From assembly GCF_016433145.1 (NCBI RefSeq), contig NC_058132.1, positions 88,677,392-88,741,391 on the forward strand: a stretch of 64,000 nt of DNA, in the 5' to 3' direction. The notes below the pieces were generated by a model. The model did not search any database. It was not told the DNA's origin and saw nothing but the letters and a program-made list of their open reading frames with translations. Of this stretch, positions 7,494 to 46,119 are shown piece by piece. Source of the DNA: Gracilinanus agilis (lineage: Eukaryota). The translations under genes were made by a program, and so were the position numbers. How positions within the stretch are numbered: the first letter of the stretch is position 1; every line of letters starts with the position of its first letter.

Positions 7494-7523
7494 AAGAAAA
7501 CTGGTCAGCTTGCAATCCATTCC

Positions 7524-9528: not shown

Positions 9529-10992
9529 ACTTGGAAGCTCTTGAATTTGGCTATTATATTCCTGGGTGTTGTCCTTTCTGGGTCTAGTGTAGAGGGTGAT
9601 CTATGGATCCTTTCAATGTCTATATTGCCCTCTTGTTGTAGAACTTCAGGGCAATTTTGCTGAATTTTAGTATGGAGTCCAAATTTCTATTAATTTCTGC
9701 ATTTTCAGGAAGACCAATGATTTTCAGGTTGTCTCTTCTAGACCGGTTTTCTTGATCTATCAGTTTCTCATTGAGATATTTCATGTTTCCTTCTATTTTA
9801 TCTGTCTTTTGACTTTGTTTTATTTGATCTTGCTGTCTTGATAGATCATTGGCTTCTACTTGCCCAATTCTTGTCTTTAGAGACTGGTTTTCTGCTATAA
9901 GCTTTTGATTTTCCTTTTCAGTTTGGTCTGACCTGTTTTCCAGCTGTTTGATTTTAGTCTCCAATTTGCTTATTAATTCTTTTGATTTGGGGGCATCTTT
10001 TTCTAATTGCTCAATTCTAGCCTTTAGAGACTGGTTTTCGGCTACAATCTTTTGGTTTTCCTTTTCAATCTGGTAATTTCTGGTCTTTGATTTACTTGCC
10101 TCACTTTCCAATTGTGAAATTCTGCCTTTTAAACTGTTATTTTCTTGCCAGATCTCTTCCATCTTTCTCATGATCTCAGATCTGAACTCTTCAAGACCTT
10201 GTGACCCATTTTCATTGTTTTGCAAAGGTTTGGATTGTTTGTTCTCCTCAGTTGTTTCCTCTGTTGTCTGGCTTTTTTCTGTGTAAAAGTTGTCAAGTGT
10301 TAAAGGTTTTTTCTTCTTCATCTTTCTCTTCTGGTTTTCCTGATGGCTTGCCATATTAAGCTGAGTTCCCGCTTAGCTTTATGCTCTTGCCAAGGATCTG
10401 TTTGTGGCTCTTTAGAGATTCCTGAGGTCTCAGGTATAGTTGTTTTGGGACAAGTCTCCTGGTGGTCTCCTTGCTCATTCTTTTGCCTGAAGCTCCTTTA
10501 CCAGTCTCAGGGAGCTGCTTCCACAGTCAAGCACCTCTCTGCACTGGGTCCCCACTCAAGGTCCACTCCTGCACTCAGGATTACCCCCTTTGTCAGTGCC
10601 CTGGGCTCAGGGTCTGCGCTCAGAGTCCGCGAGTTCCTCAGCCTCCCAGGGGGTCCCAAGTCTTGCTGCTCCCAGGAACAAGCCCTGGTGAGCTGCCAAT
10701 GACCCAATGGGTGCCCCAAACCTGTTCTGCCTCCCGTGCGCTGGCTTTGGCATGGTAGGTGGTGTGGGGTGGGGGAAGGGGGTTCCTCTGCTCATGTTTT
10801 CCTGGGAGCTGTTTCACCCCTTTATAGCATGGAAATGCCCCGTTTCCAAGTACCTCTGATGCTGCGCCCTGTTGTGGTGTCCCTTCTTTCCTCTGGATTT
10901 GTTTTTATGTCTTCTTGAGGAGTCCTATATGGGTGGGTTAGGAGAAGTAAAGCAGCTGCTTTTTACTCTGCTGCCATCTTAACCCCAAAATC
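9529..10992 (-). mobile_element. LINE-1 with complete 5'UTR and most of ORF1, 3'-truncated, flanked by TSD
   Basis: 5' end ggggttaagatggcagcagag near 10986. ORF1 ATG at 10354 leads to a coiled coil, NRSRRDNLKIIGLPE, a frameshift near 9665, then NCPEVL..IERIHRSP..PRNIIAKFKSFQVK. TSD tgcttgaa(a/g)tttt at 9516-9528 / 10993-11005. No poly(A). Confidence 0.92.
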
Positions 10993-19856: not shown

Positions 19857-20277
19857 ACTATAAAATAGAAGAAAAATTCTCAAATTGTCAAAATTCTGGA
19901 TGGGAGTTTTTTTCTATTAAGCAAAAAGAAGGATATATTAGAGGAAAATGAGGCATAATTGGTTATATTTAAATTTAAAAATACAACAAAATCCAAAGTT
20001 TCACACTTCAAATATTAATCACTTGATATCAATCATTAAGATTTAATTAGCTTTTAGAAAATGATATTTACAAAGGTAGTATATATGTGGCACAAAAGTA
20101 TATAAAATATATTTTGTGATAGCATTCAAACCCCTGTCCTCTATCAAAATCTCTGACACATTTTTCCCACAAGTATATATAGCATCTAGGGAAAATGAGC
20201 CCAAGTTTAGAACACATGTAACAATATAATTCCAGGAAGTCCCTTTGCTGGGATCCTTAGGATATTCACTTTCCATT

Positions 20278-20761
20278 TTGTTGTTGTGCAGTTGAATAAG
20301 TTGTGTCTTACTTTTAGTGATTCTCTTTGGGGTTTTCTTGGCAAAGATACTGGAGTGGTTTGTCATTTCCTTCTTCAGCTCATTTCACAGGTGAGAATAT
20401 TGAGGCAAACAGGGTTAAGTGACTTGCCTAGGTCATATAGCTAATAAGTATCTGAAAACCAATTTGAATTAGTCTTTCTGAATCAAGGCCCAGAACTCTA
20501 TCCACTGAGCCACCTAGCTGCCCTAAAATTGTTGTTGATGTTTTCAGTAGTGTCTGACTCTTTGTCAAGACCCCATTTGGGGTTTTCTTTGCAAAGATAC
20601 TGGAGTGGTTTATCATTTCCTTCTTCAGCTATTTTTTACAGATGAGGAAACTGAGGCAAACAGGATGAGGTGACTTGCCCTGGGGCACACAATTAGTAAG
20701 TGTCTGAAGCAGTTTGAACTCAGGAATATGGCACTCTGTCCACTGGGCCAGCTAGCTGGCC
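20278..20761 (-). mobile_element. Two tandem MAR1-type SINEs (shared with copy 2)
   Basis: Two successive ggggttttcttggcaaagatactggagtggttt..catttccttct.cagctc..ttttacagatgaggaaactgaggcaaacagg units. Confidence 0.85.
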
Positions 20762-22513
20762 ATTCACTCTAAATAGGGCAAAATTTTTCTGCTAGGCTTA
20801 TTGTATAACCTTGAATCTTCCTTTCCTTATTTCATCAGGTTTATACTTAGCTCCAAAGGCAGAGACTACCATCATAAGTTTGTTACAAGAGTAATGGAAG
20901 GATGCTGATGAGAAGGTTCAAATTCTCTGACTCTCCATCGTTTATAAGGCTTTCTTTTCTATCCTGAGGAGATAGGAAAAGCATGAAGGAGACTGAGATC
21001 CTTGCCTCCCTTCAGTGATTCTTTCTCAGGACCACATGGCTAAAGGCACTTTTACCCTGAAAAATGTTCAGATTTCTATAATTCCAAAATAGCTCATTAG
21101 TTTTTAAAAAAAGCCCCATGGATTGTAACAAATCCAAAATAGATATCATTTTCAAATTCACTGTAGTTCACTAAATTACAAACATCTAAATTCATGAAGG
21201 ACTTCCCCACACTTTGTCTAAAGTTTATGATTGATTGAATAGAGAAGTGTTGCCACCTGTTTGAAGTATTAAGACAGAGCATCCTTAAGAGGGGTGGGAG
21301 ATTTGATTGAGTCAGTCAACCCCTCCTTCTACTCTGCCATAAGTTACTCTGATCTCTCAATGATGTTTCTGTTGATGGAGACACAATGAAGCCTAAAATC
21401 TGGGAATGAAATTTTCAATATTTGAGTGCTTTATATGGGGTTTCCTTTTACTTTTCTCACATGATTCTGTCTCTTGGACCACATGAGTTTGAGAGGATCG
21501 GTTTTCCCATCCAAATTCCATCCTTCTAAATAGAAAACATGGACTTAGTCTTAGATGTCTGGACAATTTGGGTCATTTATAGAGAAGATTTCTTTGACCT
21601 CTTCAGTTTTTCTCCTTTCTCAATTTTTCTTGGATTATACTTATCCACAAACCTATTCTATCTTGAAAATTGTTAGTGATAAATTCATTTGGAATCAAGA
21701 ATTCATATTTTATGTTACATCTCTATTATATTATCTGTTCTCCCCATTTATACTCAAAGATGTTCTCAAACACCTCAACTTTTAAATGAGAAAGATTTTT
21801 CCCCAGTTTTTGTTTGTTTCTTTTGTCCTGAAATGAAAGAAAAAAAATAGTAAGAAGATGGGGCCCAGAATAGGGGAGAAGTTTTTTAATCTTTTCATGT
21901 TTAAAAAGCCACGTTTTCCCATAAATTTTTAAGTAAATTCAGTTATTAAGGTAAACATATATGTATGTACATATACATAGACATTTCCATAAGTAATGAA
22001 TACTCTTGGAGGTCCTGGATTTCTCATATTATCAGTTCTCAATGTTTGTGGGAGTAATATTCCTATAAAATAGCATGAAAGTAAAAATTACAAGTGTCAA
22101 CACTTTGAGCCTATAAGATATATTGGATTAGGTTTCCATAACAACAAAAAATTATAATTTTTCCTAGAAATTGCTGAAAATATACTTTAGTGCATACAAT
22201 TTTTGTAACAAAACATTTATTCTGATAATATCTACTTCATTTAATACAGTAAACAATGACACAAACATAAAATGCAGCATAGAAATAAAATCAGAGAGAA
22301 AAGAAATCTCTGAGATTGGTAGGGTCTTGACATAGAGTTTGGCACTCTGTCCTTCACAATTGGGGATGGCATTGAAGATCATGAAGAGCACACCTCATTC
22401 ATTTAGAAATTCAGCATTTCAAGGGAACATCTGACTTTATGTTCCCAGTTTCTATGTCAACAAGAGCATGAAGAGTCATATGTGACTGAAATTACTCAAC
22501 AATAACAACTTTT

Positions 22514-22694
22514 TTTTAAACCCTTGTATTTTCGGTGTATTGTCTCATAGGTGGAAGAGTGGTAAGGGTGGGCAATGGGGGTCAAGTGACTTGCCCATGG
22601 TCACACAGCTGGGAAGTGGCTGAGGCCGGGTTTGAACCTAGGACCTCCTGTCTCTAGGCCTGACTCTCACTCCACTGAGCTACCCAGCTGCCCC
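22514..22694 (-). mobile_element. Young SINE1_Mdo, copy-1 specific
   Basis: Intact A box (TAGCTCAGTGG) and B box (GGTTCAAACCC). TSD aataacaactttt at 22501 / 22698. Empty site in copy 2 at about 38406-38422. Confidence 0.92.
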
Positions 22695-22835
22695 AAAAAT
22701 AACAACTTTTGACATCACAGTTATTACTTTTTCACTTGACATACTTAATTTCTAAATGAATGAGGTGGGACCTAGGTCTGAAACTGGGGAATTGTTTCAT
22801 GCCTTTAACTGAGAAATGGAGAGATGAGATAAACA

Positions 22836-22995
22836 TCCCAGGAGATCAGCACTAGAGGCCAGTGGCTAATGGGAGTCTACATAAATTCTCTCCTCCTTCC
22901 ATCCTGACCCTGAAGAACAGCAAGCAGAAGAACCTCCAGATTTTGAGACTGGGATGGAGGGAGAGTAGGAGCATATTGGGTGAGTTAATTAATGA
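22836..22995 (+). promoter_or_regulatory. Candidate OR promoter motifs (O/E-like and homeodomain) upstream of OR51V copy 1
   Basis: TCCCAGGAGA 22836-45, TAATGG 22867, TAATTAATGA 22986-95. Confidence 0.35.
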
Positions 22996-23557
22996 GACAT
23001 TAGGAAGCACAGAAAATAAGAGATAGATTTTGGGGAAAGAAAACAAACCACTCAAAGGTGGAATGGGACTCCTTCTGAGGAGGACATCTTATGTATATCC
23101 ATGTATTCTAAATACACTGAAGAGAAGGACTACTCCTATTTTCATGTAGTTTAATTTAATCTTCCAAGCTGTCCCATCCTTCTGGCATCAGAGAAAATTC
23201 ATCCCTGATACCAAGACAGATCTAAACTCTGTAGTGAAGTCTCACAATTGCCCTCTCACAGAATTTTTTTTTTATTATCTAGTCCCCAGAATTAAAATTT
23301 GAGTCACTGAACTCTTGGATACATCAAAAGCAACAATGCCCTGGTCCAATCTGAGGGTGACAAGGCTTCTTTTTCTTGGAAAATAAAATATATTTCTCAT
23401 AAAGCTACTTAATTATGTCATCTCAGATATCATTAAGGAAGAACTGTGTGTGTTATTCTAAAATTACAATCCAAGGGTGATTTTAAATGGAAGGGAATAA
23501 AGGTTTTTGACATGGACGTAGTCCTTGATTTTACTTTAAAAAGAGAATCCTATACTC

Positions 23558-24502
23558 ATGTCTGCTCAACCTGGCTTCAATATTAGTTCCTCCATGTTCC
23601 TCCTCACAGGCTTCCCTGGCCTGGAACATTTGTATATGTGGATTGCTATTCCCTTCTCCTCCATTTATGCCATGGTTCTCCTTGGGAATTGCATGATTCT
23701 CCATGTGATCCGGACTGAACAGAGTCTGCATGAGCCCATGTTCTACTTCCTAGCTATGCTGGCCCTCACCGACTTATGCATGGGGATTTCCACTGTGCAC
23801 ACAGTCCTGGGGATCCTGTGGGGGTTCAGTGACAAGATCAGTTTGGATGCCTGTATTGGCCAGTCTTTCTTCATTCATGGTCTTTCCTTTATGGAATCTT
23901 CTGTCCTACTCACCATGTCCTTCGATCGTTACATTGCAATCTGCAACCCACTACGCTACTCCTCTATCCTGACTGATGCCAGGATAATCAAGATTGGGAT
24001 AGCCATTATAATTAGGAGCTTCTTATTTATCACTCCTGTTATCATCCGCCTAAAAATTTTCAATTACTGCCGGCCCCATGTTCTCTCTCATTCCTTCTGT
24101 CTCCATCAGGATCTCCTCAGGCTGACCTGCTCTGACATTCGCTTTAACAGCTTCTATGCATTGGGGCTAGTCATTTGTACATTAATGTTAGACTCTGTCC
24201 TCATCCTCATCTCCTATGTTCTAATCCTGAAATCTGTCTTAGCAATTGCATCTCGGGGTGAAAGACTCAAATCTTTTCAGACTTGTATCTCTCATATCTG
24301 TGCTGTCCTTGTCTTTTATATTCCCATCATCAGTCTAACTATGGTACACCGTTTTGGCAAGCACCTCTCCCCTATAGTGCATGTCCTTATGGGCAATATT
24401 TATATTCTTTTTCCACCCTTGATGAACCCAATTATCTACAGCGTCAAGACCCAACAGATCCGAAGCAGGATACAGAGACTCTTCCCAAGACAAAGGAACT
24501 GA
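23558..24502 (+). CDS. OR51V1: Class I olfactory receptor OR51V1-like, paralog A, 314 aa, intact
   Basis: PFSSIYAMVLLGNCM, LHEPMFYFL, SFDRYIAICNPLRY, HSFCLHQDLLRL, FQTCISHICAVLVFYIPIISLTMVHRFGKHLSP, GNIYILFPPLMNPIIYSVKTQQI. These diagnostic stretches are nearly identical to human OR51V1. Confidence 0.96.
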   Translation: MSAQPGFNISSSMFLLTGFPGLEHLYMWIAIPFSSIYAMVLLGNCMILHVIRTEQSLHEPMFYFLAMLALTDLCMGISTVHTVLGILWGFSDKISLDACIGQSFFIHGLSFMESSVLLTMSFDRYIAICNPLRYSSILTDARIIKIGIAIIIRSFLFITPVIIRLKIFNYCRPHVLSHSFCLHQDLLRLTCSDIRFNSFYALGLVICTLMLDSVLILISYVLILKSVLAIASRGERLKSFQTCISHICAVLVFYIPIISLTMVHRFGKHLSPIVHVLMGNIYILFPPLMNPIIYSVKTQQIRSRIQRLFPRQRN

Positions 24503-26599
24503 GTCCCTGCAGTGCTTTGTGAAGATAAAATTTAAAATATATATTATTATTTTCAATTTTCTAGATTTTGGGGGTAGTAATTATAGTAGGAAAGATATTG
24601 TCCTGAACATTTAGCTCTTCCTTTGTCTATGGAACAAATAAATTACTTAACGGACGTAAGGAATGTGCTTCAACAGGATCATCAAATTAGCAAGTCTCCC
24701 ATAAAAGAGTGAATACTAAAACATACAAGACCTCTGAGATAATCTTCTGAGGGAAATATGTCATTGTAGAATCAGTGGATGTTCAGGTCACTTAGATGGA
24801 GTGACCACAAGCATGAATGTCTGTCAGAATATTTTAAATATGTTCTGACTCTAGCTTTCAGCATTTTGGATGACTGCAAAATGATCCTCATGGAGGACCT
24901 TTAAACTACTTGACATAGCCCAAGGCATAATAGCATATACTCAATAAATATATATTCAATTGAACCCGAAAATATACATTTTTGAAATGGTTATTCCAAA
25001 ATGAAAACCAAAAAAAAAAATTAAACCATCTATACTTCATTTACTAGTTTTGTCAGGCTTCATTTTTTTCCCAAGTGTGTTGTCATCATCAGCCATAAGG
25101 AAAATGTCAAACACTGAGAGCAAGAATATCCCCATCATCATCTTTGCAGAGTTTGTAACCCTTTAGAGCTCAAAAAAGTTACATGGCACATATCTCTGTC
25201 TCTATGTCTATGGTCTCCTCCAGATAGTGTAAGGGAATTCCATGGGTGAAAGCTACTGTACATAAGGAAATCCTGATTTATCATTTTACAGAGAATAAAG
25301 CAATGGGCTTTTTCGATAAAAAAATGGATATACAGTCTGCCCTTGCTTAACTGCTCTTATTGGCAGGGTTTTCTCCCTCTCCTCAGGGAAAGGTATGTAT
25401 AGAAAGGAATAGTGTGAACTTCTCTTTGCTCTTATATCAAGGCACATCACTATGTCCTTTCAAAGTCTGGCACATTATTAGCTCTGTATTTGTACCTTCC
25501 AAATTTAACTCCTCATTCTGTTCTTCTTCTGTAAGATAGGGTAACATTCACATGTATCCATTCAAATTTCCTAATGCATTACTTAGTAGAAAGTTCTTAT
25601 GATATTGAGCATTTATAATTTTTATCTGTTGTAGAGATTTTAATCTTGGCAAGGACTATATCCATTCCTTCTCTTTCTCTTATGTCTCCCAATGAAGACA
25701 ATTTTTTTTCTCTCTAAGAAAAATACCTGTGAAAATACAGCACCTCTTTTATGGTATGTTCCTTGAAAGTGATTCCACAAATGTGTGTGTGTATATATAT
25801 ATGATTTTGGAAAATGTTAATAATGTAAGGAGAAACTAGTACTTAGGCAGATGTAAATGCCAAGAATGCATCTATAGTGACAAGCATGAAAGAATACATT
25901 TTTCAAAACAAATGGGAGGATTTTCATTGCTCAACTATACACATTTTTAACAAGAGTTTTATTTTCTCTTATTGTCAATGGCATGACAAGAGGGAGAGAA
26001 ATAGAAAATATAAATGTTAAATAGCTGACAAAAAGTGAACAGAATATGACTGAAAGGAAAGAATGGAGATAAAAAATGTGGCAGAGAGAAAATAAGATGT
26101 TATAAGAAGATTCAAAAGCAAATGGAGGAAAAGTAGGAGTTCTCAGGAGATTAATGTGCAATTGATGGATAATATGAAGTAAACCAAGATCAAGAACTTA
26201 TTGAATGTGATCTTAGCTTCAGGTAGTTGCATAACTATAAAAGGTATTAATCAGAGCAGCCAAGATCTCAAAGTAAGGAATGTTAAAAGATCACCCAAAC
26301 ACATCCAAACAATGACAAAAAAAATTCTATTGAAAATTGAAAATGGTTAAATTGATTGAAATACTACACAAAGTGCTAATTAATATACCTAAGATATTTA
26401 TGATACCTGAAGAACTTTAGACTCCTAAATTAGTTAGGATACTTATGGTATGGAAGACATTTAAGAATTTTAATACTAATACAGTGAACAAGGACATACA
26501 GAGACAGAAACAATAGAGTAGGATGAATATAATGTGATGATATCCAACAAAAAATGAAAAATGAAATCAAAGATTAGAAAAAAGGAAACACAAGGCAAA

Positions 26600-27022
26600 A
26601 AGTAAAGGAAAGAAAATTGGGAGTAAACTATCTCATATGAAGAGGTCAATAAGAATCAATACATTGGAGGGGAAAATAGATGGATAATTCTTGTACTTTA
26701 TACTCAAAGGTATTTTCACGAAGCAGAAATAACATCCACATGCAGTTAGCTATTGAGGTCCTTTTAATCCTAAATAGAAGTAAGAAGGGGAAAGAATAGG
26801 AAAAGAGGAAATTGGATAAAAGGGAAAAGGGATTGGGGAGATGGTAGTTAGAAGCAAAAATATTTGTGAACAATGAAAGACTGTGAGAACAGAAAGTGAA
26901 AGATAAACAAGGGGTAAATAACATTAAGGGAAACACAGAGTTAGTAATCATAAGTGAATGTGAATGAGATGAACTCACGGGTAAAAAGATATAGGATATC
27001 AGGGTGGATTAAAAGCCAGAAT
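26600..27022 (+). mobile_element. Old L1 inter-ORF region and start of ORF2 endonuclease (shared with copy 2, about 42350-42750)
   Basis: gtaatcataagtgaatgtgaatgagatgaactc..ggattaaaagccagaat|cacacagtgtgctgtct resembles NVNGMNSP..WIKSQNPTICCLQE. Confidence 0.7.
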
Positions 27023-29156
27023 GATATAGTCAATCTTGCTGGATAGTTGATTCCTGGTTGTAGACCCAGTTCTCTTGCTTTCCATAATATTGTGTTCCAT
27101 GCCTTCCAGTCCTTCAATGTAGATGCAGCCAGATCCTGTGTTATCCTAACTGTGGTTCCCTGATATCTGTTCTTTTTAGCAGCTTGTAATATTCCTTGGT
27201 CTGGTAGTTTTTTTTTTTAAATTTGGCTATAATATTCCTGGAAGTTGTCAATTGTGGATTAAATGTAGGAGGTGATCTGTGGATCCTAGCGATTTCCACT
27301 TTTCCCTCTTGTTCAAGAATTTCTGGGCAATTTTCTCTGATAATTTCTTGTAAAATGCTATCTAACCTTTTTCTTTTATCATGATGTTCTGGTAAACCAA
27401 TAATCCTTAAGTTGTCTTTTCTAGCCCTGTTCTCCAGATCTTTGGTTGAATCAATGAGGTGTTTCATATACTCCTCAAATTTTTAATTTTTAAAATGTTA
27501 TTTAATATATTCTTGCTGCCTTGTGAAGTCATTTGCTTCTAGTTGTTGAGTTCTGTTTTTTAAAGACTGAATTTCATCCCTGGCTTTTTGGTCATCCTCT
27601 TTCTGGTCTGATTTTCTTTGTAGATCATCTTTTGCCTTCTTTGCTTCATTTTCAAGCTGGCCAATTCTGGCTTTTAAGGCTTTATTTTCTTGTTTTAGTT
27701 CATGTATTTCCTTTTTCAAATTGTCTTCAGCCTCTCTTGATTGCTTTTTTGAGTTCCTGAAGTTGTTGAGTTAATTGAGTTTTAAATTCTTGAGTTAATT
27801 TAATTTTGAGATCTTCCAAAGCCTGTGTCCAGTGCTCTGGAACTACTTCCTCTTTTTCTATTTCTGTTTCACTTGCTCTCTTTTCACTTCCTTGAAAGAA
27901 GCTGTCAATTGTCATTTCTTTTCTCTTTTACTGTTGCTTACTCATGTTTTTTTCCCTTCCTTGTTCTGCTAGTTTGAGCAAATGTATTTAATTATCTTTG
28001 ATGAAAGATCCAGCTGGTAATGGAGGTTTGTAGTTACTTTCTCTGTCCTCTGAAGATTTCTTGTCTGTTCAGTTGTTGGGATTAATCCTCTATTTATTGG
28101 ATTAATCTTACTCCCTTATCTGTCCTGAGGCTAAAACCTTGAGGGGAGGGAAAAACAAACAGGAAAAAGAAAAAAAAAACAAATGAATAGGCATTTTTCA
28201 GATAAAGAAATAAAAAGTATCAATAAGCATATGAGTAAGTGTTCTAAATCTCTAATAATCAAAGAAATGCAAATGAAAACAACTCTGAGGTATCACCTCA
28301 CACCTAGCAGATTGGTTAAAATGATAGCAGGGGAGAGTAATGAATGTTGGAGGGGATGTGGCAAAATTGGGACATTAATGCACTGCTGGTGGAGTTGTGA
28401 ACTGATCCAACCATTCTGGATGGCAATTTGGAACTATGCCAAAAGAGCTATAAAAGAATGCCTGCCCTTTGATCCAGCCATACCATTGCTGGAATTGTAC
28501 CTCAAAGAGATCATAGATTAAACAGACATGCACAAAAATATTTATAACTGAGCTCTTTGTAGTGGCAAAAAACTGGAAAGCGAGGGTATGCCCTTCGATT
28601 GGGGAATGGCTGAACAAACTGTGGTATATGCTGGTGATGGAATACTATTATGCTGAAAGGAATAATAAACTGGAGGAATTCCATGTGAACTGACCTCCAG
28701 GAATTGATGCAGAGTACAAGGAGTAGAGCAAGGAGAACATTGTACACAGAGACTGATACACTGTGGTAAAATTTTATGTAATGGATGTCTGTACTAGCAG
28801 CAATGCAATGATCCAAGACAATTCTGAGGGATTTATGGAAAAGAACACTACCCACATTCAGAGGAAGAACTACAGGAGAGGAAACACAAAAGAAAAACAA
28901 CTGCTTGAACACTTGGGTTGATGAGAACATGATTGGGGATGTAGACCCGAAAAGACCACACCAATGTAACTATCGGTAATATGTAAATAAGTCTTGACTG
29001 ACCACGCATGTTAAAACCAGTGATAATGTGAGTTAGCTATGGTGGGGAGGTGGTGGAGGGAGTGAAGGGGGTGAAGGGTAAAGTAAAAATATGAATTATG
29101 TAACCATGGAAAATTTTTCTAAAAACAAAAAAATTATAAAATTGTTATAAAAAAAA
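27023..29156. mobile_element. 5'-inverted LINE-1 insertion, copy-1 specific (antisense ORF1/5'UTR 27023 to about 28180; sense ORF2 C-terminus, 3'UTR and A-tail about 28181-29156)
   Basis: 13-bp TSD taaaagccagaat (27010-22 / 29157-69) at a TT/AAAA site, empty in copy 2 (about 42708-42720). Minus strand YQGTTVRITQDLAASTLKDWKAW; plus strand MNRHFS..TTLRYHLTP..CWRGCGKIGTLMHCWW. Confidence 0.93.
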
Positions 29157-29204
29157 TAAAAGCCAGAATCACACAGTGTGCTGTCTAGAGAAGTATAACA
29201 AACA

Positions 29205-29395
29205 AAAACCCTTACCTTGCATCTAAGAATCAATAGTGTATATTGGTTCCAAGGCAGAAGAGAGGCAAGGACAATGCAATGGGTGTGTTTAAGTGACTTG
29301 CTCAGGGTCACACAGCTAGCAAGTGTCTGAGGCCAGAATTGAATCTAGGACCTCATACTTCTAGATCTAACTTTCAATTGACTGAGCCACTACCC
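29205..29395 (-). mobile_element. Older SINE1_Mdo shared by both copies
   Basis: aaacccttaccttgcatct..aatcaatagtgtatattggttccaaggcagaagag; orthologous copy at 42762-42951. Confidence 0.85.
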
Positions 29396-30374
29396 ACAAA
29401 AGTAATGATAATAGTAATAAAAAATGAATATTTAAACAGAGAGATACACACAGAATAAAGGTGGAGGTGTGGAACTGAATTTATTATGCTACAACCAAAG
29501 TTTAAAAAAAGCAGAGGTAGAATGTAATGGAATACTATTGCACAATAAGAAATAACAAATAATATGATCATCAAAAAACAAACAAAAACCTAGAAAGACA
29601 TACCTGAAGCAATGAAAAATGAATTGAGCAGAACCAAAGCTTTGTACATAGTAACAGCAAACTAAATATGGTGATCAATTATGAATGAAAACTATTATCA
29701 GCAATGCCAGGATGCAGATCAACTCCAAAGGACTGCTGAAGAAGGAGCTGAATGTAGACTGAAGCATGCTGTCCTTCATGTAATTTCCTCTATGTATTTT
29801 TCTCTAGTGTAAGCAATAGGTGTATTTTTTCACAGCATGAGGAACATAGAAATGTGTATCATAAAATAACATATATACAGACATAATCTAGAATATAAAA
29901 ATAAAATAGACAAAATTTTTAAAAAGGAATTAGCCACATGCCTCTCCTGGACTGTTACATATTATTTTGGAAATAAAATTTCATAATCATATAACCTCAA
30001 TTAATAAAGAGGATTCAGAGTTTATTTCACTTTAATGTGCACTCTACTCTGGTCAGCCATTTAACCTTTTTTTTTTAGATCTAATTGTGAACAATTTTTT
30101 CCTCATATTGAAGGAAAAGTATATTTCCCTATAACTTTACATTTCTCCTACTAGCTTCTATGATCATGTAGAAGAAATATTATTTTTCTATTAAAGGTGA
30201 GATTTTCCTCTATCTAAAGATCAATTGGAAAATATACCTAATTTCCCTGCTTAATGATCATGTAGCCTGGTTTCTAGTCCCTTCCTGGGCACTTACACCA
30301 ATGTCAATAATAAAATTGTTAAAGGGACCTAGGAGGATCTTACCAATATAGGTAACCCCTTCATTAGTATAGAT

Positions 30375-30556
30375 CAGTAATTCCCAAAGTGGGCACCACT
30401 GCCCCCTGGTGGGTGCTGCAGCAATCCAGGAGAGCAGTGATGTGCACAGGTGCATTTATCTTTACTAATGACTGCTATTAAAATTAAAAGAAAATTCCAG
30501 GGGAGCTAAGTAATATTTTTTTTCTGGAAATGGGGCAGTAGGCCAAAAAAGTTTTG
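30375..30556. mobile_element. hAT/Charlie-type MITE, copy-1 specific
   Basis: Starts CAGTAATTCCCAAAG. 8-bp TSD GTATAGAT (30367-74 / 30557-64). Single GTATATAT empty site at 43961-68 in copy 2. Right TIR is shortened. Confidence 0.85.
30399..30412 (-). promoter_or_regulatory. CTCF core motif inside the MITE
   Basis: Minus strand reads CCACCAGGGGGCAG, matching the canonical CTCF core. Binding not shown. Confidence 0.55.
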
Positions 30557-32719
30557 GTATAGATCAAAGGAACTGGATGGGATAAATTAGTCTACACCTT
30601 AATTGTACAAATGATAACCTTCACAGTTAGGAAGGAAAGTGACTTGATTGAAAACACATGAGTGGTAAGCTGCATAATCAAATTTCAAATCTATGTCTTT
30701 TGACTCCAAACCTAAACTATCTGCTATATCATGCTGAGGAATTTGTTATGGGAAAATCTAATTATTTATCGTATGGTTTGAATGTAGCTTTGTGTAGCTA
30801 GATATTGCTTAATCTAGGATTTGTGTAAGGGAGCCAGAGAATGCTATTGGAACTCCTCTCCTCCCCATATCTTGTTTTAGTTCCTTATTGGAAGCTTGTG
30901 TTTAAGGCTTAGCCCAAGTTTTATGAAATATTTAGATTTACCTGGAATTATAAATATCAAGAAACCTACAAGCTCTTTTTGGGAAACTCTAGGTAGTCCA
31001 CATTGCTTCTTGATCTTCTACCCTTGTTTGAATTCTATATAATATAAAATTCACAAAGGCTTAGGTAGAACCCAATTATGCATATATTCTGTCTCTTTTC
31101 TTTGATGTACAGTTTAATAAAATTCATTCTAAAATCCTTTTGGAGTTTTTGTTTTATTCTTAAACATTACTGGGAATTTTCTTCCAAAATTCTTTAAAAT
31201 ATTTCACTTTCCCCCCCCCCCCCATATGGGACATCTTTGATTTTTAGTTATGTTAGTAGTTTATACCTGTGGGGTGCTGAGTTTTTTGTAGACACTTTTC
31301 TGAGTATAGCTGAACCTACATCAATTCCAGGATATGTTTAAGATAGTTTACCATAGTCCTAGGTACACCCTTAGTGATCACAACCTTTTAAAAAACAATA
31401 TTTTTCTAATATTCTTGAGGTATATATGGTGAAAAGCCACATTAGGTCTCTGTGTCTCCTGTCTTTCTCTGTCATTCTCTTTTTCTGTCTTTGTCTCTGC
31501 CTGTCTCTTTGTGTCTCTTCCTTCTTTTTGGGTTTGTCTCTTTCATAATGAATCAATAAATTTTATTTTAAATATTATACAAAAGAAGGGAAGGGAAGTT
31601 GGAGTAGTTGTGCTGTCATGAGGAGGAGAAGTATTTCAGGAGAGGAAAAGGGAATATTTAGGTTCAAGTAGAAAGAAAATGAGGAATTAGGATACAGATG
31701 CCCATGGATTCAGAGAATCAGATGAAAGAGGGGCAGATATAAAAAGATTTTTTCTAAATAAACTGAGCAGTCCAAATTAGAACATGATGCCTTTGGAAAG
31801 AGTGGATTGCCCTTTAGCTACGTAATCATTGAATAAGCATTTATTGCAGAAAGTTCTTCAAAAAATTAAAAAAAAAAGCTACTTCACTTCTGTTGAGTAT
31901 GGTTTAGAGTAGATTCTCTGGTATGACCTATAAGAGATTATGACCTGTGAATAACAGTAATATAATAGGATGATAAAATGTGAATTACTTATCTATTCTC
32001 AGCAGAACAATGATCCAAGACAATTTCAAGTATTCATGATGAAAAATAGTATCCAACTCCAAAGAAGAACTTATGCAGTCTGAATTTGAAGGAGTCTGAA
32101 TTCAGATAAAAGCAAATTATTTTTCACTTTTATTTATGGATTTTTTTGATTTTATATATGTCTTCTACAAAATTATTAATATGGGAATCTATTTTCCATG
32201 ATACCACAAGAATAATCTTAATGAAATTGCTTTCCCATTTCATGGAGGATGGAAGGAATGGAGGGAGAGAATATAGATCTCAAATCTTTATAAAATGAAT
32301 ATTAAAAATTATTTTAAAATGTACTGGGAGTAAATATCATTGAAAAAAAGAGATGACCTTTGAATTTCCATTCAAGTGAGATTCCATGATACCAAATACC
32401 CTGAATATCTTCCATTTCCACTAATGAAAGCCTGATGCTATTTTCTTTGTTACCACCTTCTCTGAATTCATCTGACTTTTTCCATTCATACATTTCATGA
32501 TATTATTTACTCCTCAAATGTTAAATTAGTGGTAACATGCTAAGGTCATCTCATACTATCCGTTATATGCCCTTGTGTTATTATTTTTTGGTCCTTTGAA
32601 ATTATGAACCTTGAGATTTAGAGGAAACAGTTTGAAAGATACAGCCTTAATTTGAGAATAATTCTCTCAGAAATATGAATTTTGGGAGCATTGAGGAGTG
32701 GAGTTTTTTAGAGCTTTTC

Positions 32720-33990
32720 AATGTCTAGAAATAGAACTAATTAAAAACTCCAAATTAAACACCAAATTAGAAATCATGAAAATCAAAGGAGAAATTAATA
32801 AAATTGAAAGTAAGAAAATTATTGCACTAATAAGACAAGAAGTTGGTTTTATGAAAAAATAAATAAAATAGATAAACAATTGATCAATTTGATAAAAAAT
32901 CAAGGCAGACAAAAATGAAATTATCAACCTAAAAATGAAAAGGACAAAATTCCAAACAATGAAGAGAAAATTAAAAGTTATTAGGATTATTTTGCCCTAT
33001 TATATATCAACAAATCTGATAATCTAAGTGAAATAGATTAATATTTAAACAACTCTAAATTGCCAAGATTATTGGAAGAAAAATCTGAGTATTTAAACTA
33101 TCCCATCTTGAAAAAAAATTTGAACAAGCCATCAATCAACTTCCTATAGAAAAGCTCATAGAAAAGACAAATTCATAAGTGAATTCTACCAAACATTTAA
33201 AAAATAATGAATTCCAACACTCCATGAACTATTCAGAAAAAGAGCTAAGGGAGATGCTCTACCATATTCCTTTTATTACAGATATGGTGATGATACCTAA
33301 ACCAGGAAGACCAAAAACAGAAAGAAAATTATAGACATATCCCTAAAGAATAGTGATATAAAAATTTTAAACACACTACTTACAAGCATCTCATAGCAAA
33401 GTATGAAAAAGGTCATACACTATGATCAGGTAGGTTTTATACCAGGAATACAGAGATGGTTTAATATTAGGAAAACCATCAGCATCAATTTTTGAGAGAG
33501 CAAAGAACTGGAAATTGAAGGGATGTTCCTTCTTTGGGGAATAGCTGAACAAATAACAGTATATGCATATAATGGAATACCATTGTGCCATAAGAAATGG
33601 CAGTCAAGATGATCATAAGAAAACCTAGAAAGAGTTATTTGAAGTAATATAAAGTGAACAAAAAACAAGGAGAATGTTCTAAGCAGTAATAACAATAATG
33701 CAAATCAACAATGAACTACAACTGTAGGGGACAATTAAAGAAACAAGTATCCTACTTCCCAAGGTGATGGACTCAGGGTAAAGAATGAGAAACACATATT
33801 TAGACATAACCTATGTGTGCATTAGTTTTTCTTCGCTAAGCTTTGTTATTAAAAAGGATTCTTTCTTTTTTTTAAATTTCAAAGGGGAAAGAATTTGAAT
33901 GGGAGCTGAGAGATAATATTTTTTTTAAAAATATATATAAAAAGTGTAATCAAAGCATTTAAAAGAAAATGCATAAAACAATGGCAACTA
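32720..33990 (+). mobile_element. Old L1 ORF2 fragments and 3' end (shared with about 46120-47350)
   Basis: aaattagaaatcatgaaaatcaaaggagaaattaataaaattg..gaattctaccaaacatttaa..acctaaaccaggaaga..aatggaataccattgtgccataagaaatg. Confidence 0.8.
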
Positions 33991-34133
33991 TGAAAGTAAC
34001 TGGTTTAACTTACTATATGTATTTAAAAACTAAGTTTATAGAATAGTGCTAAAAGGTGTCTTCATTTCCCAACTGGCTGCATTCAATTTGTTCTTCCTTG
34101 ATTTCTTTACCATTTGTCTATCAGGAACCCTCC

Positions 34134-34273
34134 NNNNNNNNNNNNNNNNNNNNNNNNNNNNNNNNNNNNNNNNNNNNNNNNNNNNNNNNNNNNNNNNNNN
34201 NNNNNNNNNNNNNNNNNNNNNNNNNNNNNNNNNNNNNNNNNNNNNNNNNNNNNNNNNNNNNNNNNNNNNNNNN
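34134..34273. other. Assembly gap (140 N)
   Basis: N run. Confidence 0.98.
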
Positions 34274-34521
34274 TGAAGCAGGGACTTTTTTTCTTTTTTG
34301 TTTTTTCATCCCTACTTCCTTGCACAATAGATGCTTAATAAATGCTTATCAGCAATTAATTTCACAGTTTCATATGCAGCTTATCCTACTTATATTTGAA
34401 TGAGAATTTTCTATTTTAAGCAATTAAGTACAGTATAAAATATATTTTTTTAAATTACACATATGGAATCACTCTTTTAAAATCCTAACAAGGGCAATGG
34501 AAATAACAATCCCTGCTTTTC

Positions 34522-35361
34522 TTTTCTTTTTCTTTTGTATTTTCTTTTATATATATTTATATATATATGTAATTTTTAATTTTGAATAGTTTCCCATAGT
34601 TACATGTTTCATGCTCTTTTCCTATCCCCCAAACCTCCCACTCCATAGCCGACGCACAGTTCCACTGGTTTTTACATGTATCATTGATTCCATATTATTA
34701 ATAGTTGGACTAGAGTTATTGTGTTAGTAGAATTTTTTTTTTATTTTTAGAATGATTTTCCATGGTTATTCGATTCATGTTTTTACTTTCCCCTTTCACC
34801 CCCTCAATCTCCCCCCTCCCATAGCCCATTTGCATTGCCACTGCTTTTAACATGTGTCATCAATCAAGACTTATTTACATATTATTGATAGTTGCATTGG
34901 TGTGGTCCTTTCTGGTATACATCCCCAATCATGTCTGCATCAACCCAAATTTCAAGCAGTTGTTTTTCTTCTGTGTTTCTTCTCCTGGAGTTCTTCCCCT
35001 GAATGTGGGTAGCTTTTTTTTATCATAAGTCCCTCAGAATTGTCCTGGGTCATTGCATTGCTGCTAGTACAGAAGTCCATTACATTCGATTTTACCACAG
35101 TGTATCAGTCTCTGTGTACAATGTACTTCTGGCTCTGCTCCTTTCACTCTGCATCAATTCCTGGAAGTCTTTCCAGTTCACAAGGAATTCCTCCAGTTTA
35201 TTATTCCTCTGAGCACAGTAGTATTCCATCACCAACATATGCCACAATTTGTTCAGCCATTCCCCAATTGAAGGGCATACCCTCATTTTCCAGTTCTTTT
35301 GCCCCCACAAAGAGTGTGGCTATAAATATTTTTGTACAAGTCTGTTTATCTATGATCTCTG
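34522..35361 (-). mobile_element. Two tandem antisense L1 3' ends, copy-1 specific, no TSD
   Basis: T-rich tail at 34517, a second poly-T near 34733, L1 3'UTR, and antisense CPSIGEWLNKLWHMLVMEYYCAQ. Confidence 0.85.
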
Positions 35362-36152
35362 TAGTATTAAATATGGGAATGACTCAAATACCAGACTGAG
35401 GAGTGATTTCCAAGTCAATGTAGCTGACTTAATCTTTTCTGATATATGTGGAAATCTTTCCAAAATATGTCTCCTATCCTTTAAAAATAGCAAAAAGCAC
35501 ACAATCATGGAATTTATGGGTACATTAACATGACAGGTATACATTATATCATTTAGTCTACTTTGATAATACAATTTTATATCTTAGCTCACATTTAACA
35601 AATATAACACTAAAATCAATCAATTTCATCTATTTGAGCCTTAGTTTCCCTATATTTAAAATAGTGATATTTCTTGTACTATCTACCTCTTACATTTTTA
35701 ATGGAAGAGGGTTTGTGAGCTTAAAGTGCTATATAACTGTGAGGTGTTACTTTTATTTACTAAGGAACCAAAGGGAAATTCTACTGTGTCTCTATTCATC
35801 TTTTTTTTTTTTAAATCTAGCATGGCTTTCCTTGGTAACTACTAATGGGACCAGGGATAAATCATTGCAATTTTAAGGACATGCTGCTACAGTAATTTAG
35901 ATTTTGTCTGGGTTGTATACCTAATAAGGGAACTAGAATTCTCTTCTACCTCTTGAGGGATTTGTTTGGCAGAGTACTAAATATATATTGTGCTGGCATT
36001 CAACTCCCCTGTCCTCTACCAAAGTCTCTGACACATTTTTCCCACAAGTATATACAGCATTTAGGGAAAATGAGCTCAAGTTTAGAACACATGTAACAAT
36101 ATAATTCCAGGAAGTCCCTTTGCCTGGGTCCTAAAGATATTCACTTTGCATC

Positions 36153-36639
36153 TTGTTGTTGTGCAGTTGAATCAGATGTGTCATACTCTTAGTGATCCTA
36201 TTTGGTGTTTTCTTGGCAAAGATACTAGAGCGGTTTGTCATTTCCTTCTTCAGCTCATTTCACAGATGAGAATATTGAGGCAAACAGGGTTAAGTGACTT
36301 GCCTAGGTTACATAGCAAATTAAGTGTCTGAAACCCAATTTGAACTAGTCTTTCTGGCTCCAGGCCCAGAGGTCTATCCACTGAGCCACCTAGCTGCCCT
36401 AAAATTGTTGTTGATGGTGTTTTCATTAGTGTCTGACTCCTTGTCAAGACCCCATTTGGGGTTTTCTTTGCAAAGATACTGGAGTGGTTTATCATTTCCT
36501 TCTTCAAATATTTTTACAGAAGAGGAAACTGAGGCAAACAGGATGAGATGACTTGCTCAGGGGCACACAACTAATAAGTGCCTGAAGCAGTTTGAACTCA
36601 GGAATATGGCATTCTATCCATTGGGCCAGCTAGCTGGCC
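36153..36639 (-). mobile_element. Two tandem MAR1-type SINEs (paralog of 20278-20761)
   Basis: Same two-unit structure as copy 1. Confidence 0.85.
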
Positions 36640-38506
36640 ATTCACTCTAAATAGGGTGAAATTTTTCTGCTAGGCTCATTGTACAACCTTGAATCTGATT
36701 TTCCTTATTTCATCAGGTTTATACTCAGCTCCAAAGGTGTAGACTGCCATCATAAGTTTGTTACAAGAGTAATGGAAGGATGTTGATGAGAAGGTTCAAA
36801 TTTTCTGATTCTCCAAAGTTTATGATGTTCTCTTTTCTATTCTGAGGAGATAGGAAAAGCATGATGGAGACCGAGATAAGACACTTGGCCTCCCTTCAGT
36901 GATTCTTTCTCAGGACCACATGGCTAAAGGCTCTAATACCCTGAAAGATGCTCAGATTTCTCTAATTCCAAATTAGCTCATTAGTTAAAAAAAAGCCCCA
37001 TGGATTATAACAAATCCAAAACAGATTTCCATTTTTAAGTTCACTACAGTTCACTAAATTACAAACATCTAAATTCATGAAGGACTTCCCCACACTTTGT
37101 CTAAAGTTTATGATTGATTGAATAGAGAAGTGTTGCCACCTGTTTGAAGTATTAAGACAGAGCATCATTAAGAGGGGTGGGAGATTTGATTGAGTCAATC
37201 AACCACTCCTTCTACTCTTCCGTCAGTTATTCTGATCTCTTAATAATGTTTCTGTTGATGGATACACACTGAAGCCCAGAATCTGGGAAAGACATTTTCA
37301 ATATTTGAATGCTTTATATGGGGTTTCCTTTTACTTTTCTCACATGATTCTGTATCTTGGATGAGATGAGTTTGAGAGGATCAGTTTTCCCATCCAAATT
37401 CCATCCTTCTAAATAGAAAATATGGATTTAGTCCTAGATGACTGGACAATTTGGGTCACTTATAGAGAAGATTTCTTTGACCTCTTTAGTTTTTCTCCTT
37501 TCTCAATTTTTCTTGGGTATGCTTATCCATACACCTATTCTATCTAGATAATTGTTAGTAATGAATTCATTTGGAATCAAGAATTCTTATTTTGTTACAT
37601 CTCCATTATATCATCTGTTCTCCCCATTTATAGTCAAAGATGTTCTCAAACACCTCAACTTTTAAATGAGAAAGACTTTTGCCCAGTCCTATGTTTTGGT
37701 TTGTTTGTTTGTTTTTTCGTGAAATGAAAGAAAAAGATAGTAAGAAGGTGGGGCCCAGAATAGGGGAGAAGTTTGTAATCTTTTCATGTTTATAAAGCCA
37801 CCTTTTTCCATAAAATGTTTATGTAAATTCAGCTCTCAATGTAAACATTATATATATATATATATATAATTCCATAATTAATGAATAGTTATGAAGGTTC
37901 TGGATTTCTTATATAACTAGTTCTCATTTTTTGTGAGTAATATTCCTATAAAATAGCATGAAAATAAAAAATACAAATGTCAACACTTTGAACCTATGAG
38001 AAATAGGGATTAGATTTCTATAACCACCAAAAATTTTACTTTTTTGCTAGAGATTGCTAAAAAATACTTTAAAGCATATAATTTTTGTAACAAAACATTT
38101 ACTCTGATAATGTGTATGTCTCTTAATACAGTAAACAATGAAATAACGATAAAATATAGAATACAAAATAAAATCTGTAACATTCAAAACATTTTTTCCT
38201 CCTAATAATTCCCTACAATTCTGTGACCATTGGTGGTAACATTTCAATTTTTAAAAACCTGTTGGTGGATGGCATTAATAATCATGAAGGATTCACCTCA
38301 TTCATATGAAATTCAGTATGTCAAGGAATATCTGACTCTTCATGCTCCCAGCAACTGTGAAGAAAATCACGAGAACACAAAGAGTCAGATGTGACTGAAA
38401 TTACTCAACAAAAACAACTTTTAACATAACAGTCATTATTTTTTCCTTGACATATTGAATTTCTAAATGAATGAGGTGGGGCCTAGGTCTTAAACTAGGG
38501 AATTGT

Positions 38507-38703
38507 ATCATGCTTTTCCCTGAGAAATGCGGAGATGAGATAAATATCCCAGGGGATCAGCACTAGAGGCCAGTGGTTAATGGGAGCCTACATAAATTTT
38601 CTCCTCCTTCCATTCTGACCATGAAAAAGAAGCAAAAGAAACTGGAGATTCTCATACTGGGACCAAAGAAGAGTAGGATCATATAGGGTGAGTTAACTAA
38701 TGC
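38507..38703 (+). promoter_or_regulatory. Candidate OR promoter motifs upstream of OR51V copy 2
   Basis: ATCCCAGGGGAT (EBF/OE palindrome TCCCNNGGGA at 38547-56), TCCCTGAGAA at about 38517, TAATGG at about 38578. Confidence 0.4.
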
Positions 38704-39290
38704 AATTTTAGGAAGCACCAAAAATAAGAGAGAGATCTTGGGGAAAGAAAACAAACCACTCAAAGGTGGAATGAACTCCCTCTGTGGAAGACATCTTATG
38801 GATATCCAAATATTCTAAATGCACTGAAGAGAAGAACTACTTCTATTTCCATGTAGCTTAATTGAATCTTCCAAGCTGCCCCATCCTTTATAGCATCAGA
38901 GAAAAATCCCTGGTATCCCTGATACCAAGACAGCTCTAAACTCTGTAGTGAAGTCTCACAACTGCCCTCTTCAAGTATCTTTGTTGTTTCTGTTGTTGTT
39001 TTTATTATCTCATGCCCAGAATGAGAATTTGAGGCATTGAACTCTTGGATATATAAAAAGCAACAATACCCTTGTCCAGTCAGAGAGTGACATGGCTGTT
39101 TTCCTTTGTAAAATAAAATATATCTGATAAAGCTGCTTAATTATGTCACCTCAGACATCTTTCAGGAAGAACTATGTGTGTTATTCTAAAATTATAGGAC
39201 AAGGGTGGTTTTAAATTGAAGATTTTAAATTGTTTAAATTTGACATGGACGTAGTCCTTGATTTTACTTAAAAAAGAGAATCCTGTACTC

Positions 39291-40235
39291 ATGTCTACTC
39301 AACCTGGGTTCAACATTAGTTCCTCCATGTTCCTCCTCACAGGCTTCCCTGGCCTGGAACATTTGTATGTGTGGATTGCTATTCCCTTCTCCTCCATTTA
39401 TGCCATGGTTCTCCTTGGGAATTGCATGATTCTCCATGTGATCCGGACTGAACAGAGTCTGCATGAGCCCATGTTCTACTTCCTAGCTATGCTGGCCCTC
39501 ACCGACTTATGCATGGGGATTTCCACTGTGCACACAGTCCTGGGGATCCTGTGGGGGTTCAGTGACAAGATCAGTTTGGATGCCTGTATTGGCCAGTCTT
39601 TCTTCATTCATAGTCTTTCCTTTATGGAATCTTCTGTCCTACTCACCATGTCCTTCGATCGTTACATTGCAATCTGCAACCCACTACGCTACTCCTCTAT
39701 CCTGACTGATGCCAGGATAATCAAGATTGGGATAGCCATTATAATTAGGAGCTTCTTATTTACAATTCCTGCTATCATCCGTCTAAAGATTTTCAATTAC
39801 TGCCGGCCCCATGTTCTCTCTCATTCCTTCTGTCTCCATCAGGACCTCCTCAGGCTGACCTGCTCTGACATTCGCTTTAACAGCTTCTATGCATTGGGGC
39901 TAGTCATTTGTACATTAATGTTAGACTCTGTCCTCATCCTCATCTCCTATGTTCTAATCCTGAAATCTGTCTTAGCAATTGCATCTCGGGGTGAAAGACT
40001 CAAATCTTTTCAGACTTGTATCTCTCATATCTGTGCTGTCCTTGTCTTTTATATTCCCATCATCAGTCTAACTATGGTACACCGTTTTGGCAAGCACCTC
40101 TCCCCTATAGTGCATGTCCTTATGGGTAATATTTATATTCTTTTTCCACCCTTGATGAACCCAATTATCTACAGTGTCAAAACCCAGCAGATCCGAAGCA
40201 GGATACAGAGACTCTTCTCAGGACAAAGATACTGA
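39291..40235 (+). CDS. OR51V1: Class I olfactory receptor OR51V1-like, paralog B, 314 aa, intact
   Basis: Same motifs as paralog A, with 20 nt differences. The track ORF begins at an upstream TTG (39258); the ATG is 39291. Confidence 0.96.
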   Translation: MSTQPGFNISSSMFLLTGFPGLEHLYVWIAIPFSSIYAMVLLGNCMILHVIRTEQSLHEPMFYFLAMLALTDLCMGISTVHTVLGILWGFSDKISLDACIGQSFFIHSLSFMESSVLLTMSFDRYIAICNPLRYSSILTDARIIKIGIAIIIRSFLFTIPAIIRLKIFNYCRPHVLSHSFCLHQDLLRLTCSDIRFNSFYALGLVICTLMLDSVLILISYVLILKSVLAIASRGERLKSFQTCISHICAVLVFYIPIISLTMVHRFGKHLSPIVHVLMGNIYILFPPLMNPIIYSVKTQQIRSRIQRLFSGQRY

Positions 40236-42761: not shown

Positions 42762-42951
42762 AAAACCCTTACCTTGCATATAAGAATCAATAGTATATAT
42801 TGGTTCGAAGGCAGAAGAGAGACAAAGACTTGGCAATGGGTGTGATTAAGTGACTTGCCTAGAGTCACACAGCTAGGAAGTGTATGAGGTCAAAATTGTA
42901 TCCAGGACCTCCTACTTCTAGATCTGGCTTTCAATTGGTTGAGCCACTGCC
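42762..42951 (-). mobile_element. Older SINE1_Mdo shared by both copies
   Basis: Paralog of 29205-29395. Confidence 0.85.
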
Positions 42952-45900: not shown

Positions 45901-46119
45901 ATTATTTACTCCTCAAAAGTTAAATTACTGGTAACATGCTAAGAACGTCTTATACTAACCATTCTTGTATTATTATTTTGTTGGTCCTTTGAAATTATAA
46001 CTCTTGAGATTTAGAGGCAACAGTTCAAAAAGATACAGTCTAAATGTGAGAATACATCTCTCAGAAATGTGATTTTAGGGAATACTGAGTAGAATTTTTA
46101 CAATGTGTAGAAAAAGAAC

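Follow-up and report, generated by a model that had tools for sequence, protein, structure and literature searches.

Receptor genes and duplication units of the window

The window, that is, the whole stretch of 64,000 nucleotides that was analysed, harbors four olfactory receptor (OR) genes. Two of them, paralogs A and B, reside in the two units of a tandem segmental duplication of ~14 kb, the units lying 15.7 kb apart, and a third, paralog C, offers an outgroup within the window.

20105-34521, no strand: duplication unit 1, which carries A (self-BLAST blocks, 85-88% identity to unit 2)
35979-47897, no strand: duplication unit 2, which carries B (self-BLAST, 85-88% identity to unit 1)
23558-24502, plus strand: paralog A, an intact OR51V1-like class I olfactory receptor of 945 nt (ATG to TGA) and 314 aa, with G108, I158, T159 and V161 on the pocket floor
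39291-40235, plus strand: paralog B, an intact OR51V1-like receptor of 945 nt (ATG to TGA) and 314 aa, with S108, T158, I159 and A161 on the pocket floor
59741-60685, plus strand: paralog C, an older OR51V-like gene with 74.5% nucleotide identity and the motif FITPP

The ORF listing shows the reading frame of B open upstream to a TTG at 39258; its start codon is likely the ATG at 39291, which is aligned with the start of A. Both proteins match the Pfam model 7tm_4 (PF13853, cutoff 27) over profile positions 1-277/278 of 280, with 378.6 bits for A (E = 3e-113) and, again at full length, 377.7 bits for B (E = 6e-113). Among solved structures, the closest to both are consOR51 (E = 7e-128), OR52cs and human OR51E2 (E = 2e-93). 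All of the best 120 database matches are named OR51V1 or OR51V1-like, the top named match being the OR51V1-like protein XP_001373928 of M. domestica (96%), and the gene tree places A and B inside the marsupial OR51V clade with a support of 100/99. By this homology, A and B are class I ORs of family 51, subfamily V, and, as judged from their sequences, tandem copies of a single OR51V1-like class I gene, from a didelphid other than M. domestica. Our literature search found no report of an OR51V1 agonist.

Paralog C has orthologs in M. domestica (XP_001373904), wombat and koala. The fourth OR gene, at 7521-8474 on the plus strand, lies upstream of the OR51V array. It is an intact but more distant class I receptor, which shares 37% identity with A and matches 7tm_4 over its full length. 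On the minus strand, positions 9620-10354 encode a lysine- and glutamate-rich coiled-coil ORF of 244 aa, which gives only sub-threshold Pfam coiled-coil matches and is probably a retroelement ORF1-like remnant. A repeat of ~520-630 bp is present in three copies (404-919, 28506-29133 and 34736-35360; 82-85% identity, one inverted), two of which are found near the ends of duplication unit 1. These repeats probably derive from a transposon; they may have mediated the duplication or may post-date it.

Gene conversion has homogenised the coding core

Base-by-base comparison of A and B yields exactly 20 differences in 945 nt, 6 of which fall in 24030-24055 (39763-39788 in B). The recount matches exactly what an earlier sequence-only reading of this DNA had listed, and the identical tracts of 150, 242 and 281 bp named there have the lengths claimed. 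Counted as substitutions in a global alignment of both units, in A coordinates, the divergence is distributed along the units as follows.

5' flank: 13.9%
CDS nt 1-79: 5.1%
23637-24029: 0.25% (1/393)
24030-24055, the island: 23% (6/26)
24056-24393: 0.30% (1/338)
Last 109 nt of the CDS: 7.3%
First 368 bp past the stop: 6.8%
Distal 3' flank: 10.7%

The ~14 kb of flank that can be aligned between the units is 86-88% identical, with 11-14% divergence and many indels. The near-identical portion of the coding region is delimited as follows.

A 23637-24393 and B 39370-40126, plus strand: homogenised (converted) core of 757 bp, codons 28-278, with 2 differences in 731 nt when the island is left out

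Without the island, the divergence of the core is 0.27%, which differs strongly from that of the flanks (Fisher p = 2.5e-30). With the island set aside, the core has a synonymous divergence (pS) of 0.006 and a non-synonymous divergence (pN) of 0.002; these values reach 0.17 and 0.034 at the CDS ends, and 0.39 and 0.155 within the island. Synonymous differences are found at 1 of 169 sites in the core, as compared to 7 of 41 at the CDS ends (Fisher p = 5e-5). As such differences cannot be removed by purifying selection on the protein, the core of A and B has been homogenised by interlocus gene conversion. Homogenisation outside the island, which had been proposed before, is thus borne out by the contrast of the core pS with that of the ends and with flanks diverged by 10.7-13.9%.

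The stretch of ~370 bp past the stop codon (24503-24870 in A, 40236-40603 in B) is less diverged than the outer flanks (6.8% versus 10.7-13.9%). Constraint on the 3'UTR could account for this low divergence, as could the remains of an earlier conversion tract of greater length.

A narrow divergence peak within the converted tract

Inside the converted tract lies a narrow peak of divergence, which we refer to as the island. One further replacement in the core affects codon 108.

A 24030-24055, plus strand: divergence island, codons 158-166, TM4 positions 4.57-4.65, 6 of 26 nt differing
B 39763-39788, plus strand: counterpart of the A island
A 23879-23881 (GGT, Gly) and B 39612-39614 (AGT, Ser), plus strand: codon 108, position 3.34, adjoining the pocket His at 3.33; the difference is at nt 322

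The island differences are located at 24030, 24031, 24033, 24039, 24049 and 24055. From A to B, codon 158 changes from ATC to ACA (I to T), codon 159 from ACT to ATT (T to I) and codon 161 from GTT to GCT (V to A), and synonymous changes affect R164 and K166. The codon comparison thereby agrees with the conversion of FITPV into FTIPA noted earlier, and the statement that G108S is the sole other replacement in the central CDS holds between codons 28 and 309. All four replacements of the core (3.34 G to S, 4.57 I to T, 4.58 T to I, 4.60 V to A) are on the TM3/TM4 side of the pocket. Neither the change at codon 108 nor any of the six island differences is at a CpG site.

Under uniform placement over 945 nt, the probability that some 26-bp window contains at least 6 of 20 differences is 0.0011. 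Within the core, 6 of the 8 differences are confined to 26 of 757 bp, a clustering reached in none of 100,000 simulations, and the island is bordered by 393 and 338 bp with a single difference in each. The rate of 6/26 exceeds the 6.4% of the unconverted CDS ends (binomial P = 0.005), whereas it is not significantly above the 13% flank rate (P = 0.11). The pN of the island is ~4.5 times that of the unconverted CDS ends, and its pN/pS is ~0.4, although an island of nine codons gives dN/dS no power. Compared to paralog C, island changes have occurred on both the A and the B lineage. These changes on both lineages, together with the synonymous differences, fit an old patch spared by conversion better than a recent burst of mutations. 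By a rough estimate, a 26-bp remnant placed at random would include two pocket residues in ~10-15% of cases, so that the location of the island alone offers modest evidence.

The island maps onto chain-length positions of solved receptors

The alignments of A and B to OR51E2, consOR51 and OR52cs are all ungapped. In the phmmer alignment, residues 6-309 of B pair with residues 13-316 of the OR51E2 chain 8f76_A, and H107, H183-Q184 and R265 fall on H, HQ and R of that chain. The chain histidine at 114 is H104 (3.33) in the numbering of the OR51E2 paper, and native OR51E2 numbers are therefore those of the query minus 3. Positions 158 and 161 of A and B correspond to F155 (4.57) and L158 (4.60), position 159 to F156, position 108 to A105 (3.34), positions 183/184 to H180/Q181 and position 265 to R262. 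This is the offset of three and the assignment of 158 and 161 that the sequence-only reading had used, and the alignment puts both residues on pocket positions rather than outside the pocket. In OR52cs the numbering (H107 3.33, V158 4.57, F161 4.60, R265 6.59) coincides with that of A and B. When aligned to OR51E2, both paralogs possess the carboxylic-acid-type pocket residues R265 (6.59), H107 (3.33), H183 and Q184, in line with the earlier remark that the carboxylate-binding arginine and the HQ motif are kept in both. Position 6.55 is T261 in A and B and serine in OR51E2.

In the cryo-EM structure of OR51E2 (8F76; Billesbolle et al.), F155 and L158 touch the aliphatic tail of the ligand. The mutants F155A and L158A enlarge the modelled pocket from 31 to 90 and 68 cubic angstroms, respectively, move the optimum to C8 and C6, weaken C2 and C3 and open the receptor to C4-C9 acids (Billesbolle et al.); the earlier statement that alanine at these sites admits longer acids is hence sound. 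According to the same cryo-EM paper, more than 80% of human class I ORs have a residue of the V/I/L/M/F set at 4.57 and 4.60. For OR52cs, V158(4.57)F shifts the preference from octanoate towards heptanoate, and its authors emphasise a combinatorial basis of selectivity. At the same position, consOR51 has I157, which is linked to medium-chain acids. By homology, the divergence peak appears to coincide with sites of known functional effect.

Relative to A, B gains two extra hydroxyls, at S108 and T158. By standard residue volumes, I to T at 4.57 and V to A at 4.60 remove ~100 cubic angstroms, comparable to F155A, while T to I at 4.58 and G to S at 3.34 add ~80 cubic angstroms back. As T159I and G108S return volume, a larger pocket in B is not assured. 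With the loss of volume partly returned and two hydroxyls gained, any difference in tuning between A and B may be one of polarity or shape no less than of chain length. A specialisation of the two receptors by chain length would be plausible. From class A GPCR contact analyses, 3.34 and 4.57 would probably be in direct helix contact.

The B residue set recurs in other mammals

In an alignment of 193 OR51V-like proteins, G108 is present in 186 and I158 in 176. S108 and T158 are found in 6 proteins each and occur together in 4, namely B and one protein each of wallaby, bilby and hedgehog (hypergeometric P = 4e-6, assuming that the cases are independent). A further database search, in which residues 100-170 of B alone were scored, ranked first a wallaby paralog (XP_072472708, P0003) with exactly the B set of S108, T158, I159 and A161. 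The same search recovered a bilby paralog (P0046) with S108 and T158, and hedgehog OR51V1 (P0142) with S108, T158 and I159. When each of the four carriers is compared with its three nearest relatives, G108S and I158T are seen in four of four cases and T159I in three of four; these are the only identical changes that recur in at least three lineages.

Trees for counting the origins were built without the columns of the set itself. A, B and XP_001373928 of M. domestica form a clade with a support of 100/99, and the hedgehog protein is placed among placental OR51V1 (96/86). A clade of B and the wallaby protein is rejected (AU p = 2e-14); a single clade of wallaby and bilby is not (p = 0.27). By the gene tree, the set appears to have arisen at least three times, or twice if a marsupial cassette persisted through conversion, and as gene conversion can rewrite such trees, the count of independent origins is possibly inflated. 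An independent-pairs sign test of S108 against T158 gives 3 concordant and 0 discordant pairs (p ~0.25), too few contrasts to carry weight, and we therefore rely on the recurrence counts and the hypergeometric figure.

The wallaby gene with the full S-T-I-A set is an intact, separately diverged paralog, 93% identical to its neighbour. We considered whether B might be an ancient ortholog of this gene. The unconverted N-terminal end of B carries the didelphid-specific residues F7, H24 and L25, which are common to A and the M. domestica ortholog, and the flanks are 86-88% identical to those of A. With young flanks and a didelphid-specific N-terminal end, B is not itself the ancient wallaby ortholog, and this candidate is ruled out; the B locus is, from these sequence features, a young duplicate of A. 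Among the annotated proteins of M. domestica there is a FITPV ortholog (XP_001373928), a FITPA paralog (XP_001373882) and no B-type (S-T-I-A) protein. The protein database search on residues 100-170 likewise found no other didelphid S-T-I-A protein.

A161 is present in 28 of the 193 OR51V-like proteins and is common in marsupial paralogs. Pairs of paralogs with either V or A at 161 are widespread, occurring in Tasmanian devil, sugar glider, tammar wallaby and M. domestica; in Tasmanian devil (P0123/P0124) and sugar glider (P0128/P0130), A161 versus V161 splits the pair. Dromiciops (monito del monte) has a pair, P0125/P0133, that is 97% identical and differs by S108 versus G108. These marsupial OR51V pairs suggest that the same pocket sites have diverged or been converted repeatedly. 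Paralog C (FITPP) has proline at 4.60, as do its orthologs from M. domestica, wombat and koala and 72 of the 193 proteins, so that V, A and P represent discrete subfamily states of 4.60. All four proteins with both S108 and T158 have F104 (3.30; 23867-23869 in A), as compared to Y104 in 146 of 193 relatives, and F104 may provide a background that permits the S-T-I state.

Origin of the divergence peak

Selection against conversion predicts a divergence peak of this kind (PMC3924837), and we consider it probable, given the position and recurrence of the changes, that the island was kept in this way. Interlocus conversion would repeatedly have copied one coding region onto the other, rendering codons 28-278 nearly identical. 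Conversion tracts that erased the differences at 108, 158, 159 and 161 would have produced a mistuned receptor and been removed by selection, leaving a narrow peak around the selected sites with synonymous differences hitch-hiking along. The residue set of B is probably an alternative pocket to which OR51V receptors have turned repeatedly, in several mammalian lineages, and B is inferred to prefer other carboxylic acids than A, either longer or more polar ones. The set may have originated by four single transitions after the duplication, in parallel to other lineages, or by micro-conversion from an older paralog. The sequence-only reading had already claimed that selection protects the island; this claim gains from the recurrence of the rare S108/T158/I159 set in wallaby, bilby and hedgehog and loses from the M. 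domestica annotation, which holds no B-type protein.

The island might instead be a neutral remnant, missed by two conversion tracts or by one patchily repaired tract, with G108S as a new neutral mutation and no functional effect at all. Discontinuous conversion tracts are common, and the retention of synonymous as well as replacement differences, the changes on both lineages relative to paralog C, the P of 0.11 against the 13% flank rate and the missing B-type protein among annotated M. domestica proteins all speak for such a patch. Chance survival does not, however, predict that a rare set of residues recurs in three other mammals, nor that all four core replacements are at or next to pocket positions; it requires tract ends no more than 26 bp apart and has to accommodate the ~4.5-fold elevated pN. 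The recurrence of the rare set across species moves the balance away from a neutral remnant and suggests selection rather than chance upkeep, and we judge the remnant unlikely. We give a similarly low probability to the import of a cassette, in which B, once homogenised, received short tracts from an older S-T-I-A-type OR51V paralog elsewhere in the cluster, with selection being optional. Shared ancestry of a cassette would be the simplest account of the identical four-residue set in the wallaby paralog, a more divergent donor would explain an island pS above that of flanks and CDS ends, and the youth of the B locus (flanks, H24, L25) agrees with its not being an ancient lineage itself. Yet no donor for the B island is present in the window, which has only the four OR genes and in which the B island 30-mer is unique at up to 3 mismatches, and the region-ranked search returned no further didelphid S-T-I-A protein. 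Codon 108 and the island are separated by 150 bp without a single difference between A and B, so that import needs two separate micro-tracts, and the hedgehog case indicates that the triad is able to arise independently.

Relaxed constraint would describe B as a redundant copy drifting to loss, with T at 4.57 and A at 4.60 as mildly deleterious states not yet erased. Both residues are indeed outside the V/I/L/M/F set of more than 80% of human class I ORs. Against this, B retains an intact ORF with every OR motif and a 7tm_4 domain of full length, A161 is common in marsupial OR51V paralogs (28/193), the wallaby S-T-I-A gene is intact and separately diverged, and drift offers no explanation for identical recurrent changes, making decay of B a very improbable account. 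Least credible is an assembly artefact, with two haplotypes or a collapsed or expanded repeat assembled as paralogs, as the near-identical CDSs might hint. The units are 15.7 kb apart, the proteins of A and B are both in the public genome annotation, and the diverged, indel-rich flanks rule the artefact out.

Returning to selection against conversion, we can tentatively extend it to the subfamily, with rather less assurance than we attach to selection on the island. There might be two discrete OR51V pocket states, a common one with G at 3.34, I at 4.57 and T at 4.58, and an alternative one with S, T and I, often together with A at 4.60. The states would be epistatically coupled and reached in parallel in at least three mammalian lineages (didelphid, Australidelphian marsupials and hedgehog), always in one member of a pair of duplicates, and in this opossum the alternative state would be shielded from ongoing conversion.

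Significance and comparison with known systems

New odorant receptor specificities after duplication are mostly inferred from the statistics of large families. A and B form a natural swap experiment, as codons 28-309 are identical save for four residues, two of which are at chain-length positions known from cryo-EM and mutagenesis. If the predicted difference in tuning is confirmed, the pair ties structure-derived rules to natural evolution and becomes an olfactory counterpart of red/green opsin selection resisting gene conversion. The residue set also points to a possible TM3-TM4 coupling, of 3.34 with 4.57 and 4.58, beyond the scope of mutagenesis studies so far. If the reading with two pocket states is true, nature has repeated the experiment on which residues retune a class I odorant receptor. 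What is new here is the recurrence of the S-T-I(-A) pocket set across mammals; the pattern of conversion with a peak is itself known.

Concerted evolution and gene conversion among clustered OR genes have been known since studies of primate OR clusters, and near-identical tandem coding regions within diverged flanks, as in A and B, are shared with these systems. Most such reports concern homogenisation as such, whereas in A and B the spared sites are on structure-validated tuning residues and recur across species.

Among solved receptors, OR51E2 belongs to the same receptor class and has the same H at 3.33, HQ in ECL2 and R at 6.59, and A and B differ from each other exactly at the validated positions 4.57 and 4.60. 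OR51E2 is an OR51E receptor with F and L at these positions, while A and B are OR51V receptors with I or T and V or A, and the pockets of both are probably already larger than that of OR51E2. Single alanine substitutions were made in OR51E2, whereas A and B differ by a natural set of four residues that includes 3.34 and 4.58. OR52cs, the octanoate-bound consensus OR52, shares the numbering of A and B, and 4.57 modulates its chain-length preference. It is, however, of a different family, with ~55% identity to A and B by eye, and its selectivity also involves 5.47 and 6.55, which are both unchanged between A and B.

The closest parallel is offered by the primate red/green opsins and the gibbon L/M opsins, which display the signature of Teshima & Innan (2008). 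Like A and B, these are conversion-homogenised tandem duplicates ~15-24 kb apart. In the opsins, a divergence peak at the exon 5 tuning sites of the red/green pair and in the gibbon L/M pair has been read as selection against conversion (PMC3924837; PMC3213168). Both systems display a narrow peak at few residues, which are tuning sites in the opsins and predicted tuning sites in A and B. In the opsins the introns are homogenised too, whereas conversion between A and B is confined to the single-exon CDS with flanks diverged by 11-14%. The functional effect of the opsin sites has been measured, whereas that of the A/B sites is predicted by homology to receptors of the same class.
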